A DNA stretch of 56,317 nucleotides, the filler included, from Platydemus manokwari (lineage: Eukaryota): assembly GCA_037951405.1 (NCBI GenBank). It is 6 parts of 6 records of this genome, joined end to end, with 100 filler letters (N's around TTAATTAATTAA, not from the genome) between each part and the next. Parts side by side here need not be neighbours in the genome. Positions count along the whole stretch, not along the records: positions 37,836 to 47,494 come from JBBMOY011221098.1; 5 more parts are not named here. One strand, given 5' to 3'. Made by a program: the position numbers and the translations under genes. Position 1 is the first letter of the stretch, and every line of letters begins with the position of its first letter. The notes beneath the pieces are model-generated. The model was not told where the DNA came from and searched no databases. It saw nothing but the letters and a program-made list of their open reading frames with translations. Shown one piece after another: positions 37,731-47,494 of this stretch.

Positions 37731-37945
37731 AACAANNNNNNNNNNNNNNNNNNNNNNNNNNNNNNNNNNNNNNNNNNNNTTAATTAATTAANNNNNNNNN
37801 NNNNNNNNNNNNNNNNNNNNNNNNNNNNNNNNNNNATTCATCCCCTACAGGCTATTTCTATATATTTTTAAAATAATAAATTCTTTGATTAACTTGATGA
37901 GAAAACTTATTTTTTTAATCATTTATATAATTAATTTTATTCTAG

Positions 37946-38250
37946 ATAACAATTATTTCAACAACAATTATTGGACTACCGGCAATCAGCATTATAAGTC
38001 CTTCAGTGAAGGAAAATCATCAACCATGTGGAGTGATGATATTTTGAAACCCGTTATCAATGATATTATGACAAACGAAAAGAACATTCAATTATGTGCC
38101 AATTATAGCCATAAAAACCCATTTGATGTGACATGGGTTCGTAACACAACAACAGCAGCAAATAATTATAATAATATTAACAACAACAACAATAATAATA
38201 ATAATAACACAATTATCAATAATCATAACACCAATCCTTTTAAATCCTGA
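37946..38250 (+). CDS. Terminal coding exon of a probable Numb-like endocytic adaptor (upstream exons not in this contig piece)
   Basis: T-rich acceptor (tctag) then an open frame ending ...KNPFDVTW...(Asn-rich)...TNPFKS*, resembling the xPFxxxW ... TNPF C-terminal motifs of Numb. A long 3'UTR-like sequence follows. No PTB domain is visible. Confidence 0.5.
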
Positions 38251-41200
38251 ATCTATCTAATCGTCCGGTTCATTTTCAGTACAAAGAATGTTACGTTATA
38301 ATCATTCCTTATCATCTTTATTTGCCTTTAACCCAAAGCCTTTGGGCACTTTTAATAATAAATCATTATTACAATTATCGATTAATTATTTTATTCATTT
38401 ACACACCTTTCTAATTGTGAAGATTTTTATTAATTTCGATTTTCAAATGTGACAAAAATTGTATACAAAAATTTATATAATATGATAATAAAAATAGTAA
38501 TAATGATATTGATTATCGGTGGAAATTTTCTGTGATTTTTTCCGATTGATTTCAAATATGATTGTGCGAGAGCGTATACAATTTTGTCTTTAGCTGGTAT
38601 TTATAAAAATTTTCGATATACACGCATATGTATAATACATTGCAAATTTCATTTTTATTTCCATTCGTTTCAAGATCATTATATTTTGTTATTTTTATTC
38701 GACCAATTATCTATGGGTGATCGCAGCTGATAGACAGTTTTATATGTTATTGTAATTTCTTGCTCAATGGATTTTATTCTCTTTGTGGTCAAGATATATA
38801 TTATATTGTATTTAGTAGGTTTGTTCGATTATTGTCAAATATTTGCAGACAGATAACGAGAATAAATGTTTAGCAATCATATGAATATACATATATGTGT
38901 GAATGAGATTTTTTTCTGTAACATTTTAAATAGATCATGTGATCTGTGGGTTTTATAAATATAATATTTTTTAGGAGATATTTTTATTTTGATTAAACGT
39001 GTTTGCTTTATGATGTGAAAAAACATTGTATTCGAATAATTATTCACGTTAAATTTTGATAGTAAATTGTTTACGTGTGATTGGTTAATGTTTTATTACT
39101 AGTTTTGTTTGGAATGATGTATTTTCCAAATTTTCGTGACAGTACGTGATAAGATGATGAAATTAATAATGATGATTTTTAGTTTTAGTTCATCTCAATG
39201 ATAAGATGATGTAAGATAAATGATCACCTCATTACACTGTTGGCTTATGTTGTTATTAAGGTTACTTTTTTAGTGGTCAATCTAATTTTAATTAAGTCGC
39301 CGTAGGACATCGAAACCTCAACAATTATTTTGGCCGAATCAGTGGTTTCAAATATGTTTGTCATTGCTGACCTCTTGCTATGTCTTTATTTTTTTAAAGG
39401 ACATTAATATTGGTACTCAATTTCAAATTTATTATTATAAATCTTTAAATAATTTTTTTTAATTATATACTACTTAATTTAAGTAAATAGTATATAATAA
39501 TATTAAAACAAATGTTGGCAATATATTATATTTAGACGTTGTATTAAAAAGTTTATAAGGCTTCAAGTCAATTTTCAACTAACGATACTGTGAATGTAAT
39601 AATTTGAATTGAATAAATGTAAAATTAAAAATATATTGTAGATGTTTTAAAGTTTATTAGAATTGTAAATTCCGGTATTTTACAAAAATCTACAACACCC
39701 GTGATGTTACAAATGTAATAACACTTCATAAGAAGAAAATTTTTAATTCATTATAAAACATTTAAAGAATTTTACGAATCTTGATCACGGGGAGCTTTTT
39801 AAAACCGATGAAAGAGTGCCACGGTAATCTATAATCAATCGGTAAAATTTTGGTGGTTAGTTTTATTTATGTTAACCAATTGTCGAAGTTTAGTTTATTG
39901 CCCCATCTAATTAAGCCGATATTGAAAGACTGGTTTTTTGATGAATAAGACTAGAGTGCTTATTCATATTTCTAGATCCAATATCTAGAATTTTGTATTA
40001 TGTTTTTATTATAATTGAGGTGGCCATCAATTTGACATACTTGATTGAAATTTAATTTTCAAATGAGGTTTGAAAAGCACACATGGTAATACAGTATTGA
40101 AATGTCATCAGATGTGAATTTTTCAAGAATAACGACTATTTTTTGCAGTTGAAGTTTTCTTCTGCAGATTTCTTTTATCATTTGGATTAAATTAAAAGTT
40201 TGTTTATGAACCTTATTGCTACTTGTTCCTGCTACTATCATAAATGTATGGACTTACCACCAAGACTACCTTTTCAAGCTTTTAATGCAAGTCTTAAAGC
40301 GACTCTTGACACATGTTTTGGTTTGACTATGAATATCTCAACTCATTATATTCAAACATCAGTTCTGAGAAGGTATGATCTCGCAATCCAATGAACATCC
40401 ATAAACATTTAGCAAACTATTTAACAGTGTGAATAATTCTGAATATGATTAATGCTTGTTAATGTCTACAGTAGTTTTTATCGCATTTGACTGAATATAG
40501 TGTTTTTGTCTAATATTGATTTAAAAGTTCCATTTTTGTAAATATTTGTAAAAATTTTTAAATAAAGCTCCTTTGTGAGTGGCATTATTCTTATTGTTTA
40601 AATTGAGAATATTTCAAATCTTAATCACACACTTTACAATCCACCAATCAAAATTCCCAAGGGTCAAACAAATAACAATATATCTGTCCAAAATGAATAG
40701 ATAATAAGTAACCATGAGCATTACTTCATAAACATTTACTCTCAATACCAACTAGAAGAATGATTTATTCACATTATATTGAAAATTTTACTTTATTTAG
40801 AGTTTATTTATCTAAATAATAATACAGTGTAATTAAGTTTTCCACTTATAAAAATCAAGGCTTAGCATATGTTACAGTGGAATTACAATTATACAGCTTA
40901 TCTCGATGCTACAAAATATTATTGGAGGGTCGAATAACTTTTAAATATCAATGACTTTCAAAATGGATTTAAGATTTTCATTGAAAATAAATGCATTTTA
41001 TAGCAATATTTTAAACAAATTTAGGAAGCGGGTAATTTGAATTATCGATTATAGATTATTCTCTCAAAGGATATATTTGAATTATCACTTTCTATAAGAT
41101 TACAATATTAGTTTTGAAAAATCATTTAATTTCGTCGTACAATAACAGTTTATGAAGCAAGATTTAAAAATCTGAAGACAGTAACGACAAAATTCTATGA

Positions 41201-43370
41201 GAAAATATTTGAATAACACTGAAACATGACGCTATGAAATTGAAATTCAATATTTCAACTTGATTTTGATTGTTTTCGGTGTATGTATGTTAGTCATTGA
41301 TGCGGCATACTTGTGTTGAATATCAAAAAGATATTTTGCACAGAATCACGATACAATCTAAAATGTGCTCAAAGAAATATGGGCTAAAATTGTATTAGTT
41401 GTATTAAATACAAATTATGAGGTTTTTAAAATGAATTATAAAAAGTCAAAATACAAACACAATTTCGTGTTTTGTAAATTTTCGACTTGATTATAATGTC
41501 TGCTTTTAAAAAATGATAGTGGCCTATACAAATCATTAATGATGATATCTAAAATTAATTTGGATAGTTTATTTATAAATAGTTTTCAGATCTATGATAG
41601 TTAAACGATATTATAATTATAGAAATGTAATAACAAAAGGAAAATTATAAATATGCTAATTTAAGCACTTTCTTATAGAAGATCTGCATACGCTATTAGT
41701 AAGGCATGAAATTCCTGTAATCATTAGTCTAGAGTTGCTTCAAATTCTTCGCATTCTATTCTCGAATTCTGATTCATCTGTTTGACAGGAAGTCATTGTT
41801 ATCTTTCTTTCATGTTTTGTTTAACCGCTATCAATTGTTGCAAAATAAAAATTCATATCACGTGACCATCTTAAATTGCTGTTTTAACGGGCGATATGTT
41901 TTTCATTTTAAATTATTTCTTACAATATAATCTATCATTTATATTTTAAATTTTTTTAAAACGTTTTTGTGTGCATTATTCTCTCCTTGTTTCTCTATGA
42001 CATTTATGCAGTAGTAAATAAGTAGTGATTATATTATTATTTTAATATTTTATTTATTATGTCACACCACTATCGGTTGAAATGCAATATTGACTATCAA
42101 TTGGGTTGAGTTCTCTGAAATTATTGAATGGTTATTTGGACCAATGAGTATCTCTATTCAATTTTAGAAAATAAATAATTAGAGGAAAATAGAAATAAAT
42201 TCCATAAATTATTATAACCGCATATTATTATTATTAAATTATATTCATTCTCGGCTAATGATAATTTAATTTCGTCAATGTTCGGCAAATTGAAAGCATA
42301 AATTTATTGAAAATCGCCTTAAATACATTGAAATACAGTCTACTAAATAAAGTGATGAAGATGTTAAGATTGGAAATAAACCGACGGAAATTTTTATTTT
42401 TAAAATTATTAAATTATTAAAACGACTGAAAACGATTGGAAAAAATTTGTAATTAAAATATTATTTGTAAATAATTGGTGAAAAACAAGTAATCAATATA
42501 TAATCGTTCCTTGTTTTCAAATGTAAAGGCGTCTCTCTAATAATGTCGAAATTATGTATTTAAAAAAGCTTTAATTTTAAAAATGATTATTTTAATCTTC
42601 CAAATTTTTCAGTAATGTTTAATGACTACTGGTATCATTTAACATGGCATTTACAAGGAAAATTACTACAGTGCTATTCAAGAGCCAATTATATTATTTT
42701 ATTTGAGTTATATACGCTGGTTATAATGTAGAAATACAGACTTAAAACAAAGTTTAACAAAAATGTTTATTCTATTAAAACAAATAATTTAAAAATCAGA
42801 ATCGATTAATACTGGGTGGCCTAGTGTGCAGGCGCTTTAACACCCTAAAACATGATAATATTATGTAAAATAAAATATTATCAACATACTCTATATGTAT
42901 ATATATGTGTGTATATGTGTGTCTGTGTGTGTGTCTGTGTGTCTTACTTAAACTATTTCTTATACTATATATAATAAATTTCTAAATTTAAACAAAGTTT
43001 TGTGTTTTTTAATTTAATATTTTTCAACTATTTATACCAGTTGATACTATGTATTTGATATAATAATTATAATTAATTATAATTAATTATTATTTTAAAT
43101 ATTATTTTAAATTAATTATCTGATTGAGCCACGATCATCCTTCATACTCGTAGCTCAAACTGTGAACTATTGTGAAATGGATTTTTCTACTCCAATGGGA
43201 TTTATTCTGACGGCAAAAATGACACAAAATTTATTACCGATCAGCTCTTTAAAATCCCGTCGGGTTTTGCTTGAATTTTTAGCTACAAGTAATTCTAGGT
43301 TTTGAATTACTTGATGAATTCATCTCAAAATTTGCATATAAACGAATAGCTATTCTCTAAATTTCTTTGA

Positions 43371-43429
43371 GTCATATCTGTCTCCGGTCCAAGGCACTGA
43401 TGAGGCCCATTGAAGGCCGAAATAAAGAC
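43371..43429 (+). ncRNA. Hammerhead ribozyme, type III topology (HH1), predicted cleavage after C43378
   Basis: AUC site, stem I UGUCU/AGGCA, core CUGAUGA (43397-43403), stem II GGCC-CAUUGAA-GGCC, GAAA (43419-43422). Stem III is GUC-A-UAU / AUA-AA-GAC (imperfect). Confidence 0.8.
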
Positions 43430-43493
43430 AATATCCATATCATAAAACCACCATTACTATCATTGCAACTATCGCTCCAGAGGCTCCGAGAGA

Positions 43494-43553
43494 TCATCCT
43501 ATATATCTTTGAACCGCGATACTGATGATGGTTATGAAAAACCGAAATAAGAC
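43494..43553 (+). ncRNA. Hammerhead ribozyme, type III topology (HH2), predicted cleavage after A43503
   Basis: AUA site, stem I UAUC/GAUA, core CUGAUGA (43522-43528) plus one extra U, stem II GGUU-AUGAAA-AACC, GAAA (43544-43547). Stem III is UCCUAU/AUAAGA with one mismatch. Confidence 0.7.
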
Positions 43554-44415
43554 TAATTTTTCAATAAAGGTAGTTTATTTACTCATTTATTTTTTTAATA
43601 TTTTGACCACTTAACATTTTGAAAATATTTTAATATTATCGTGTATTAGATAAACGGTTTTTTATAGAAATTGATATCACAAAATCTTCGATTATTCCTC
43701 TTTGAAAATTATTCTAAGAGCTTACTGAATAATGTCACCTAGTTATTTAGAATCAATATTTCGGATTATCAATAATATATTTTCATTATCTTATCCAATT
43801 AAAAAACAAATTCAATCTCTCTTTCAATCAATTATGTTTACATAATCTAATTTTCCAATATTTATTACAATTCGATTTAGAAATTTTCAATATTTTCAAT
43901 CATTATGTGTACAATATCGGAAATTTATAAAATTCAAATACAATATTTTCCAATTTATATTTATTGATATTTACAAAATATAAGTCTCGATTTTTGAATT
44001 TCATTCCTGAAGTTTCAGTATATCTTTTGAAGACATTTTCAGTCAGATATTTTCATTGAGTCTTTGGAGATACACGGAGTACTTACGTTTTACATTGTTT
44101 GAAGGATCCAGGGCATGTATAAATTATTTTGTAAAATATTTCTTTTACATTTTTAACATTAAAATTTTCATAACACTTTGTAAATAAATAAGACAGACTG
44201 AAGTTGAGATATGCCACCACCATGTATATAAGACTAGGACGACGGCCATTTTGATTAGAAATATCGAAGTTTTCTTCTTTGTTTTGAGAATAACTCGTAA
44301 AAGTGACGAAACATAAATTCATATTGTCAATGAAGTCTATTTTTGAAGACCATTTAAATACAGTGGAGTATCGATTAGTCATCTAATCTCAAATTCAGTT
44401 ATATACAGGTCTATA

Positions 44416-44623
44416 CAGTATTTTCCGGACTATAAGATGTACCCTCACTATGAACTGACTGATTAAATTAAAATAAAAATGTACAGCAAAATGTAATGCT
44501 CTTTATCATCTAAAGTGTCACATTCGCTTATATTAACATCACCACAATCTTTTTTAATATTCCTGCCTTAACAAATCCTAAAAATCTCTATTAAAGTGTG
44601 CCTTATAGTCGCTTAAAATACGG
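44416..44623. mobile_element. Tc1/mariner-superfamily (pogo/Tc2-like) MITE
   Basis: TIRs CAGTATTTTCCGGACTATAAG / CTTATAGTCGCTTAAAATACGG, with TA on the left flank. Confidence 0.7.
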
Positions 44624-44892
44624 TGTATATATATATCAACTATTTCATATACGAAGTATGTTTTCTTTGAGATCCTTGTGAAGTATTAGGCTTATTATTT
44701 CTGGGCTGAGTATATTTTTGATAAATTAATATTAACCAAAACTTCAATAATGGTTGTAACAAGCAGTCCGGTGTTATTCTTTGTCGCTTATAGGTTATGA
44801 AGAGTTCTGAATATTTAATTAATTGATAGACTGTATATCCATAAATATATTTCGTTGATTGATACTTCTCATTTTTATCATGGAATTAATAG

Positions 44893-45902
44893 GACGAACC
44901 AGTCAGTGCTCAAAGTCTCGCCTTTTCTCGTGATGGTGTAAAGCTGTATTGTGGATTTGATAAATGTATTCGTGTGTACGATATAACGCGACTTTCCGAT
45001 ATTCCAGAACGCCGACCTCGTATTGGAAGTAATAATGTTATATGAGTTTTATAATTATTTATTTCTAATATCAATTTCCATTTATCGCACCATTTAATGA
45101 TTATCTTCAATGGATTGATAATGAAATATTTTGTCCAATAGATAAATCCGATTTGAGAGGAATCATATCTTGTATCGCTACTAGTTCTGTCAATATTGGC
45201 ATGTATGCATGTGGCTCTTATAGTAAAGATGCGGCAATATTTCACGAGAACTCCAAAGAGGAAATCATGGAATTCTTGAGAGCTGACGATAGAATTGGAG
45301 GAATTACTCACATTGAGTTCTCACCGACTGATATGAACTGTGTTGTTACTGGCAGCCGAATCGATAATGCTCTCCATGTGTGGGATTTGAGAAATCCTGG
45401 ATCACCGTTGTATGCAACAGCAAAGAGAAATGTTCAGACCAATCAAAGGATTTATTTCTCATTCGATCCGTGAGTTTCAATGATGTTCATGGAGATGTGA
45501 TTTGATTTTAATGATATTAGCACTGGCAACTATATCATGACGGGTAATCATGATGGTCAAGTTTCTGTATTCTCCATCAATGGTGGTCATATTGTGGTTG
45601 ATGATGAATATATTCTACCGAAAATTGCTGAATGGTCAGCTCATAATGATGTCTGCAATGGTCTTTCACTTCATCCATATTTGCCATTATTAGCAACATG
45701 TTCCGGTCAAAGGAGAATTGTGCCACCATGGCGTCGACAAGGCATGTTGAATTCGAATGGTAATCAGAATTCGGGAGATGATTCTGATGATTGGTCAACT
45801 GATGAAGATAATGATGTCATGTTCGGTGTTGATGAAAACCAACTGAAAATTTGGTCTTATCCAGTCATTAATGAGGTTTTAAATAGAAATAATGAGTTTT
45901 AA
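44893..45902 (+). CDS. WRAP53: WRAP53/TCAB1 (telomerase Cajal body protein 1, WD40), 3' exons 44893-45028, 45142-45469, 45521-45902; 5' exons not found
   Basis: In-frame join: DEPVSAQSLAFSRDGVKLYCGFDKCIRVYD...RGIISCIA...YACGSY...GGITHIEFSP...WDLRNPG...TNQRIYFSFDPTG...HNDVCNGLSLHPYLPLLATCSGQR. These are hallmark WRAP53 motifs. Confidence 0.92.
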
Positions 45903-47395
45903 CCTTGTTTTATTGGCTTTTTATTTCATATTGTCTTGTATTGATCCAAGCTCGATTGATAGTTTTTGAATTTGTGCAAATATCTTGTTTATATTCACGA
46001 TGTTTAACTCGTTACATTTTAAAAATAATGTATTTCTATATTTTGGTACCAGTTGCCATGGACACCCGCTCAGTGATGGATTAAGAAAATTATTTTGGCT
46101 CATTCACTTATTTTTTATTCAAACTCACTATTACAGTGTCTCTTTCTTCAACAATGAATAAATGATAATTTTAGAAACATTCGATAGTTTATTGAGAACA
46201 ATATTAATAAATAATATTATGGCTACATGTGATGATATGTCTTTCAACATGGTTGGCATAAAGCAAATCTGTGTATGAAAATGAGCGGGTGTGACCGCTT
46301 TAATGTACTTATTTGATTACGAATTATTAAAATTATGAATGAGTGATTCCTGATTAAGAATTAGAAAAATTGCATTTATTTTCTTTGATTACGAATTAGT
46401 CTATGAAATTCTGGTACTGCATTTACCGCGTCGTGGTATGTCATGGAATTTACGGTTTCGGCCGCGGTACTCATTAAATAAATTATTTAGCGTGGGTTGG
46501 TTGGTTGAATTTAAATTTTTTGATTCGAAGGTGCTTCAGTAACTGGTATGAAGACCAAATTGCTGGAAAAATTATCTATTTAAACTAAAGGTCTGTCACA
46601 GAGAGGAACTGTCGTTGCTCTGGGTCTGAAATAATGAATCCCGAGAAAACAGAAAAACACGCTTTATTTTACTAAAATTGACGTAGTAATTAATATTATA
46701 CCGATACGATCAAGAACGCTAGCTGAGGTGATAATATTTATTAATGACAAAACCGAGAAATAACATTTGATATGAAAAACAACAAAAAAACGAGAGTTCA
46801 AATGACCAGTACCTTGCCTATGCAACTAACCGGTAAATCCGTAAGATGAACGAAGCAGAATGTTAATGAATGCAGGAGATGGTGGTTATCGACACCTCGA
46901 ATAGTTATAATTAATTGTTATAAATGGAATATAATTAATACACCGTATACGTAACTTATTAATTAATAATATGTTAATTTAAAATGATAATGATTTCACG
47001 TGAAAAGTCTAATTACTAACAACAAACGAGCCATTATTCTTATGTTTATTCTAGGAATAAAAATGACGAATAATAGGAAAATCAAATATCGGATTTGAAT
47101 AAAAATTAATCAATTCCTTATATTGATAAAAGAAGTTGCTGTCGAATAATTCCAAAATCCAATAAGCGAATTAAAATAAAAATCGATTAATTCGGTGTCG
47201 ATGGCTGCTTCATAAATCATTTGCTCGTCAATGAATAAATTGTGGGTGTACAACTAATTCCAACCACCGTATTTATAGTTGATTAATAGATACTATAAAT
47301 TGATCATCCTAGTTGACCTTATTATGTATTTATTGTTGTTTATTTATTTTATATTTATTCTGACTAGCAGCTCTTTTATATAATCACTTTATATA

Positions 47396-47494
47396 TTAGG
47401 TTGTAAATAAAGTTCGTGGACAAAATTGGAAATAAAAATTTGTTGTACATAAATTTATTTAAAACAACAACTATCCCTCAAAATAAAGTCCGTC
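47396..47494 (-). mobile_element. Mariner 3' end (TIR plus last transposase codons)
   Basis: TA-TTAGGTTG TIR; the minus strand reads DGLYFEG*, a typical mariner C-terminus. Confidence 0.65.

Follow-up and report, generated by a model that had tools for sequence, protein, structure and literature searches.

Hammerhead ribozymes of animal genomes are known mainly as type I motifs borne by repeats; type III motifs are uncommon in animals, and those described so far occur as isolated copies. The locus studied here raises the question of why two different type III hammerhead motifs should lie close together, on one strand, in the AT-rich DNA of an animal, Platydemus manokwari. The window, i.e., the whole stretch of DNA, comprises 56,317 nucleotides (nt) and consists of six parts of six records of this genome (GenBank assembly GCA_037951405.1) joined end to end, with 100 filler letters between each part and the next. 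The motifs, called HH1 and HH2, are located in the piece that comes from JBBMOY011221098.1 (window positions 37,836 to 47,494; 9,659 nt), upstream of exons of the gene TCAB1/WRAP53. Judging from their sequence, we lean towards regarding HH1 and HH2 as genuine, related type III hammerheads that have been shaped by selection, and whose predicted cleavage of a host-strand transcript would fall at 43378/79 and 43503/04.

Architecture of HH1 and HH2

HH1 (43371-43429, + strand) was recognised from its sequence, from a descriptor match, from a sub-threshold match to the Rfam family RF00008, and from the covariance model R1 described below. The 5' strand of its stem III, GUCAUAU (43371-77, + strand), is paired at 43375-77/43422-24 and, across a 1x2 internal loop, at 43371-73/43427-29. 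The cut is predicted 3' of H17, which is C43378 (+ strand). This nucleotide is followed by an 18-nt stem-loop I (43379-43396), in which UGUCU and AGGCA form 4-5 bp (43379-83/43392-96) around CCGGUCCA, by the core CUGAUGA (43397-43403, + strand; no extra base after it), by a stem II GGCC/GGCC (43404-07/43415-18, + strand) capped with the loop CAUUGAA, and by GAAA (43419-22, + strand) with a tail, UAAAGAC, that reaches 43429.

HH2 (43496-43553, + strand) was recognised from its sequence, the descriptor and R1. The 5' strand of its stem III (43497-43502, + strand) is paired at 43500-02/43547-49 and, across a C.A mismatch, at 43497-98/43551-52, and the cut is predicted 3' of H17, in this case A43503 (+ strand). 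The 18-nt stem-loop I (43504-43521) is composed of UAUC/GAUA (43504-07/43518-21) around a 10-nt loop. The core CUGAUGA (43522-28, + strand) is separated from stem II by an extra U (U43529, between A9 and G10.1), stem II is GGUU/AACC (43530-33/43540-43, + strand) with the loop AUGAAA, and GAAA (43544-47, + strand) is followed by the tail UAAGAC, up to 43553. The spacer between the motifs (43430-43495, + strand; 66 nt) bears no likeness to the sequence 5' of HH1 or 3' of HH2.

The conserved hammerhead core (CUGANGA, GAA, the pair A15.1-U16.1, and a nucleotide other than G at position 17, either C or A) is present in both motifs, as is the pair G10.1-C11.1. Both also show the three-helix topology in which stems I and II are loop-capped and stem III is open, the lengths of helices I/II/III being 5/4/3(+3) bp in HH1 and 4/4/3(+2) bp in HH2. 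Beyond what the descriptor demands, they have in common the 18-nt stem-loop I, the distance of 15 nt from core to GAAA, and the UAA(A)GAC tail. An initial annotation of this DNA, made from the sequence alone, had described two CUGAUGA...GAAA cores of identical architecture on the + strand, sharing the residues U..G..CC in loop I and UGAA in loop II. All the sequence features that it listed are present at their coordinates, the shared loop residues included, and the cut sites that it placed after 43378 and 43503 do bound an interval of 125 nt (43379-43503). With respect to architecture, the 18-nt stem-loop I, core, 4-bp stem II and GAAA are indeed shared, but identity is broken by U43529, which only HH2 possesses.

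The same annotation held that both stems III look decayed from a GUCUUAU/AUAAGAC consensus; a decay of both from perfect pairing is doubtful. In both motifs, stem III starts at the core with three A-U/U-A pairs, is then interrupted (A43374 versus A43425/26 in HH1; C43499 versus A43550 in HH2), and continues with two or three further pairs. Since the same position is interrupted in both copies, the interruption is probably a shared, ancestral feature, an explanation simpler than two independent hits.

When aligned without gaps, HH1 and HH2 are identical at 38 of 65 positions (about 58%), and their local alignment score is 36, versus 14.6 +/- 2.9 in shuffles. The sequences before, between and after the motifs show no mutual similarity (p = 0.47-0.95), the likeness being limited to the motifs of about 58 nt. 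The differences between the stems are compatible with pairing, as had been claimed: the pair 1.2-2.2 changes from G-C to A-U, and the pairs 10.3-11.3 and 10.4-11.4 change from C-G to U-A, with both sides altered in each case, while the pair 1.3-2.3 changes from U-G to U-A by a single-side substitution. Pairing is intact throughout the four positions of stems I and II that lie nearest to the core.

Canonical type III hammerheads (RF00008) have the same core and NUH triplet, the same closed stems I and II with an open stem III, a 4-bp stem II starting with G-C, and the GAAAU box. However, their stem I is of about 6 bp with a loop of 6-8 nt, whereas here it has 4-5 bp and an 8-10-nt loop, and their loop II is of about 4 nt instead of the 6-7 nt found here (PMC7936874). 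The interrupted stem III, the extra U after A9 in HH2, and the sub-threshold Rfam scores also set the pair apart from the canonical form.

If the two motifs are what they appear to be, selection would have preserved their structure, whether at the locus itself or in the family of elements from which they came. The + strand would most likely be transcribed within a long intron or the 5' region of the co-oriented TCAB1/WRAP53 gene. Upon transcription, stems I and II would fold as local hairpins and stem III would be closed by the flanking strands, so that each motif would cut 5' of its stem I, after C43378 and after A43503. Cleavage would sever the transcript and free a 125-nt RNA that, according to hammerhead chemistry, would bear a 5'-OH and a 2',3'-cyclic phosphate. 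That the strand is transcribed and cut, that the 125-nt product arises and might be ligated into a circle, and that the pair is intronic are all inferences.

Chance expectation, model scores and predicted folds

The descriptor used in this analysis specified the core, the pair A15.1-U16.1, a non-G at position 17, and at least 3 bp per stem. On both strands of the 9,659 nt it matched HH1 and HH2 only, whereas 0.03 matches per piece are expected from dinucleotide shuffles. A first-order Markov sequence of 40 Mb, with the composition of the piece, yielded matches at a rate of 1.3e-6 per nt-strand. At the quality of the pair (stems of 4/4/3 bp or more) the rate was 2.5e-7 per nt-strand, and matches within 300 nt of each other did not occur. 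Same-strand pairs of this quality within 300 nt are thus expected at about 2e-11 per genome bp (both strands), or about 0.04 per Gb. The only candidate for a further, decayed hammerhead in the piece, a core match with one mismatch at 42325, is at chance level and was discarded.

The covariance model R1 was trained on four type III hammerheads of phage and metagenome origin, none of them from the locus, and was applied with filters off. HH2 obtained 25.4 bits (E of about 1e-5) and HH1 25.1 bits (E of about 2e-5), these E-values being rough. Elsewhere in the piece R1 did not exceed 8.9 bits, which leaves both motifs about 16 bits above background.

A chance resemblance in AT-rich DNA, picked up by the scanning of many windows, could be argued from the fact that lenient descriptors match random sequence at the rate mentioned, i.e., hundreds of times per large genome, and from an Rfam score below threshold. 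However, it would have to account for a same-strand pair of a quality expected so rarely per Gb, for two spacings and a tail that are shared though the descriptor requires neither, and for the margin over background in the covariance model; we consider it very improbable.

Several results weigh against the view that HH1 and HH2 are competent hammerheads. The check with Infernal and Rfam suggested in the initial annotation turned out unfavourably: RF00008 gives HH1 18.2 bits, where 48.5 are needed to reach the gathering score (on the piece, E = 7.8; on 321 nt, E = 0.26), and does not report HH2. R1 is not fully independent in the GAAAUAAGA tail, because two of its four training sequences (L013c and L029) were retrieved by a pattern derived from the locus, and share this tail by construction. 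By inspection, no Watson-Crick pairing between loop I and loop II is common to both motifs. The core-proximal part of stem III consists of three A-U pairs only, and the stem-loop I of HH2 is unstable on its own. The hammerhead fold has a predicted energy of -8.6 kcal/mol in HH1 versus -15.0 for the minimum free energy (MFE) fold, and of -0.4 kcal/mol in HH2 versus -7.4, so that it is 6-7 kcal/mol worse than the competing folds. In these, loop I pairs with the 3' side of stem II (HH1), or AUCAUC (43493-98) pairs with GAUGAU in the core (HH2). In the MFE fold of a 190-nt context neither hammerhead is formed, the core of HH2 being paired with the spacer. Finally, neither a homologue nor a second copy was found in the piece or in the metagenome, viral, prokaryotic, phage and protein collections searched.

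Some of these points can be qualified. In the phage-like contig L013, one type III hammerhead obtains 21.6 bits from RF00008 and the other two are not detected; the sub-threshold Rfam score therefore weighs little, because textbook phage hammerheads of this type score no better. Natural hammerheads often differ from the MFE fold, and folding programs take no account of tertiary contacts or of folding during transcription, when hairpins I and II would be the first to form. According to these models, HH2 looks at best thermodynamically marginal and HH1 looks more competent.

The predicted 125-nt product (43379-43503, + strand) would contain the HH1 body, the 66-nt spacer and the 5' strand of the HH2 stem III. 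Its structure is unexceptional: the linear 125-mer folds at -19.5 kcal/mol (z = +0.8), a value with which a rod-like, viroid-type fold was rejected, and the circular form folds at -14 kcal/mol. The hybrid hammerhead that ligation would rebuild across the junction of the 125-mer has -5.2 kcal/mol versus -15.9 for the MFE fold.

Mobile elements and phages as possible sources

The pair is placed in the 3' half of an island of higher G+C content (43120-43555; 37% GC). The segment 43371-43553 has 42% GC and its flanks 9-20%, while the piece ranges from 23 to 39% GC in 500-nt windows and contains almost no long open reading frames (ORFs). Because the pair is GC-richer and still foldable despite its divergence, within AT-biased DNA, it must, as far as such composition can tell, be either constrained or recently arrived.

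Tandem hammerheads are a hallmark of retrozymes and Penelope-like elements (PLEs) (PMC7229834, PMC4918200), and the initial annotation interpreted the pair as a small ribozyme-based mobile or circular RNA (circRNA) unit. The ribozyme-motif part of this interpretation stands, given the full cores, the three helices, the compensatory changes and the covariance model; the mobile or circRNA part is a possibility that lacks its other expected hallmarks. In the 9.66 kb examined, the ORFs tested gave no Pfam match to reverse transcriptase (RT), endonuclease or any other transposon protein, and upstream of the TCAB1 exons there is no interior open frame of more than 99 amino acids. TRF found no repeat with a period of about 125 nt in the piece, and no decayed extra copies were detectable in the island or downstream of it. 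A repeat search showed no long direct repeat and no flanking direct repeat that stood out. With respect to a primer binding site, a polypurine tract or a 4-bp target-site duplication, nothing obvious was seen by eye or in the repeat search, short repeats being unjudgeable in AT-rich DNA. A decaying 125-bp tandem repeat was rejected because the similarity is limited to the motifs, the spacer and flanks being unrelated, and because no further copy and no such TRF period exist in the piece. A tRNA-like content was also discarded, since no tRNA was found in the piece or the spacer, and all other ribozyme and RNA families stayed well below their Rfam thresholds in the region.

The known systems resemble the pair in different ways. 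Plant retrozymes with long terminal repeats (LTRs) also contain two co-oriented type III hammerheads that excise a ligatable intervening RNA, as predicted here. However, their ribozymes are near-identical and each resides in one of two near-identical LTRs of about 300-400 bp, whereas no LTRs are present here and the motifs share about 58% identity. In addition, their interval is of 600-1000 nt versus 125 nt, and they exceed 55% GC, in contrast to the AT-rich animal DNA of this locus (PMC4918200). Metazoan non-LTR retrozymes and the hammerheads of PLEs coincide with the pair in the animal host, the low GC content, and tandem hammerheads that could yield a small circRNA (PMC7229834; bioRxiv 10.64898/2026.07.22.740005). 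In these elements the motifs are of type I, found either in homogeneous repeats of 150-450 bp, with one hammerhead per unit, or in pseudo-LTRs (pLTRs) beside an RT ORF, but here they are of type III and in neither context (same sources); an ORF for RT, with or without GIY-YIG, between pLTRs was not found in the 9.66 kb. The DNA genomes of termites and dipterans are already known to contain rare, isolated type III hammerheads, which are also found in agents resembling hepatitis delta virus (HDV) (PMC7936874). Like HH1 and HH2, the insect motifs occur in animal DNA and in regions without recognisable ORFs, but motifs of this kind are single, and their helix I is long, with an internal loop and an extra hairpin, and is accompanied by a GCCR/YGGC pseudoknot with loop II (PMC7936874). 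Compared with that description, helix I is here a simple 18-nt hairpin, and the motifs are paired.

Retrozyme or Penelope-like membership of the pair is not supported, because no tandem repeat, LTR, RT remnant or other copy was found. The main alternative is that HH1 and HH2 are an inactive relic of a repetitive or mobile element that bore ribozymes, e.g., a retrozyme-like one of type III, and that selection acted on the element family. We regard it as possible, if clearly doubtful. The weak and interrupted stems III, the marginal fold of HH2, the capacity of the spacer to sequester the HH2 core in the MFE fold, and the association of tandem hammerheads with retrozymes and PLEs are all in line with it, and the GC-richer island could be an insertion. 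However, the similarity ends with the motifs, which leaves no LTR or repeat unit, no flanking repeat or RT/endonuclease remnant was seen, and the piece and the collections searched hold no further copy. Moreover, both cores are perfect and the stems still pair despite so low an identity.

Relatives were sought with sequence patterns. One that both motifs satisfy, stem I included, had 0 matches in metagenome contigs. A looser pattern gave 10 matches in metagenomes, none in viral contigs and 3 in genomes of prokaryotes; nine of the 10 metagenome matches look like chance, the exception being an unrelated phage-type hammerhead (L029), and the three prokaryotic matches are roughly as many as chance would give. 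With the broadest pattern we recovered a family of phage hammerheads with and without an extra U after CUGAUGA, plus the contig L013. The extra U of HH2 thus occurs in natural phage hammerheads. Members of this family (IMG/VR L003-L012 and L014-L021) have the form aggttaACTGATGA[T]GGCTT...AGCCGAAATAA followed by a G+C hairpin, with or without the T. L013 (IMGVR_UViG_3300021376_000069) is phage-like and carries three strong intergenic type III hammerheads, at 361-562 and 1523-1584, with stems of 7-8/4-5/4-6 bp; two non-identical motifs are 139 nt apart and one has the extra U.

In phage and prophage clusters, as in the pair, type III motifs of differing sequence follow each other on the same strand at distances slightly above 100 nt (PMC3088659; L013). 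The sizes of the stem-loops are similar and one L013 motif shares the extra U. By analogy, the clustering of different hammerheads in prophages is the nearest parallel for the arrangement. In contrast, the phage motifs have strong stems and are located between phage genes, and no sequence relationship to the window was detected. Foreign, phage-like DNA, either as a small insertion or as an assembly chimera containing a hammerhead pair that processes transcripts, seems unlikely to us. L013 is the closest architectural analogue, and its motif with the extra U also has an 18-nt stem-loop I and a loop II, AAUUGA, that resembles the CAUUGAA of HH1; clustered hammerheads are, in addition, typical of prophages (PMC3088659). 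However, 43120-43560 had no blastn match in 50,697 phage records, the island has no ORFs, and the family patterns found nothing related in the viral, metagenome and prokaryotic collections. Translated ORFs overlapping the pair returned no candidates from the protein database, and an exact look-up of the ORFs of the window found nothing on record. The sole sequencing run found to hold the locus is a DNA run, probably its source, and possibly that of the assembly; because 99% of the words of 43100-43900 are present in it, the island and its flanks are contiguous in that run.

Genomic context and significance of the pair

The piece contains the last three exons of a homologue of TCAB1/WRAP53 (telomerase Cajal body protein 1, a telomerase cofactor) on the + strand, detected by tblastn. 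The first (44893-45030), found with the protein P0002 and named TCAB1 proteins, is preceded by an acceptor (...aatag|) and followed by a GTAATA donor. A GT-AG intron of 110 nt (45031-45140, + strand) separates it from the second (45141-45470), which matches TCAB1 in the PDB, and a GT-AG intron of 50 nt (45471-45520, + strand) precedes the last exon (45521-45899; to 45902 with the stop codon). Human TCAB1 in telomerase structures was matched at E = 1e-17, and the closest named relatives, with 46-50% identity, are those of molluscs, a hemichordate, a horseshoe crab, amphibians and fishes. Environmental assemblies contain a cDNA-like contig 87% identical and a genomic contig 80% identical to the gene, which indicates that a related organism exists; these nearest contigs (698 and 973 nt) end before the hammerhead region.

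The pair is located 1.3 kb upstream of the 44893 exon and has the orientation of the gene. Because this exon starts at an acceptor and the preceding coding exon (residues 1-40 of P0002) was not detected on either strand in the 7,057 nt upstream, the pair probably sits in a long TCAB1/WRAP53 intron, in sense orientation, provided that the gene is intact. Amniotes are known to have hammerheads within introns (PMC3088659), and vertebrate retrozymes are reportedly depleted from introns (PMC7229834; bioRxiv 10.64898/2026.07.22.740005).

Such a position is also compatible with another intronic small RNA, for instance a C/D-box small nucleolar RNA (snoRNA), whose boxes UGAUGA and CUGA are contained in CUGAUGA; a C-box-like UGAUGA is found at 43398 and a D-box-like CUGA at 43522. 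However, these boxes are not joined by a terminal stem, no snoRNA family of Rfam matches in the region, and the GAAA boxes and the three helices of both motifs would be left unexplained, so that this explanation is hardly credible.

A close pair of diverged, covarying type III motifs suggests, as far as sequence can, selection on ribozyme structure outside the retrozyme/PLE framework, because the stems covary, no repeat unit surrounds the motifs, and the pair probably lies within an intron, in sense orientation. A bolder reading is that the pair constitutes a single-copy cassette maintained by the host in a TCAB1/WRAP53 intron and unrelated to retrozymes or PLEs. This cassette would excise the 125-nt RNA, which RtcB, the RNA ligase of the host, might circularise, to serve as a functional small RNA or as a tuner of the pre-mRNA; we think it rather improbable. 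If it were true, the 125-nt RNA would fall below the size range of the retrozyme circles described to date, 150 to more than 1000 nt. More generally, if the genuine hammerheads that we favour are active, the locus would provide a very small ribozyme-excised RNA and a host pre-mRNA that is cut from within; if they are inactive, it would add modestly to the genomic hammerheads already on record.

Some minor features complete the picture of the piece. The initial annotation called attention to an AATAAA at 43563. It is present, but hexamers of this kind are no more frequent than expected by chance in AT-rich DNA: AATAAA, an upstream TATAAA and a T5 run all occur at chance frequency (2.9, 1.3 and 7.2 per kb, respectively), and their reading as poly(A) signal, promoter and Pol III terminator was set aside on this ground. 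At the 5' edge of the GC-richer island, 43126-43158 (+ strand) forms a hairpin of about 9 bp, TGAGCCACGA...TCGTAGCTCA, which underlies a weak MIR845-like Rfam match on the - strand (E = 0.44); the hairpin loop includes GATCATCCTTCATA, 86% like the GATCATCCTATATA of the HH2 cleavage site. Just upstream of the island are pure A+T tandem repeats (43059-43112), 43060-43119 having 0% GC, and further upstream a (TG)n / TATATGTGTG microsatellite (42892-42942). Lastly, the 5' edge of the piece truncates a stop-to-stop frame of 137 amino acids (37837-38250, + strand) that has no Pfam match and an Asn-rich end, and that may be an exon of a neighbouring gene.

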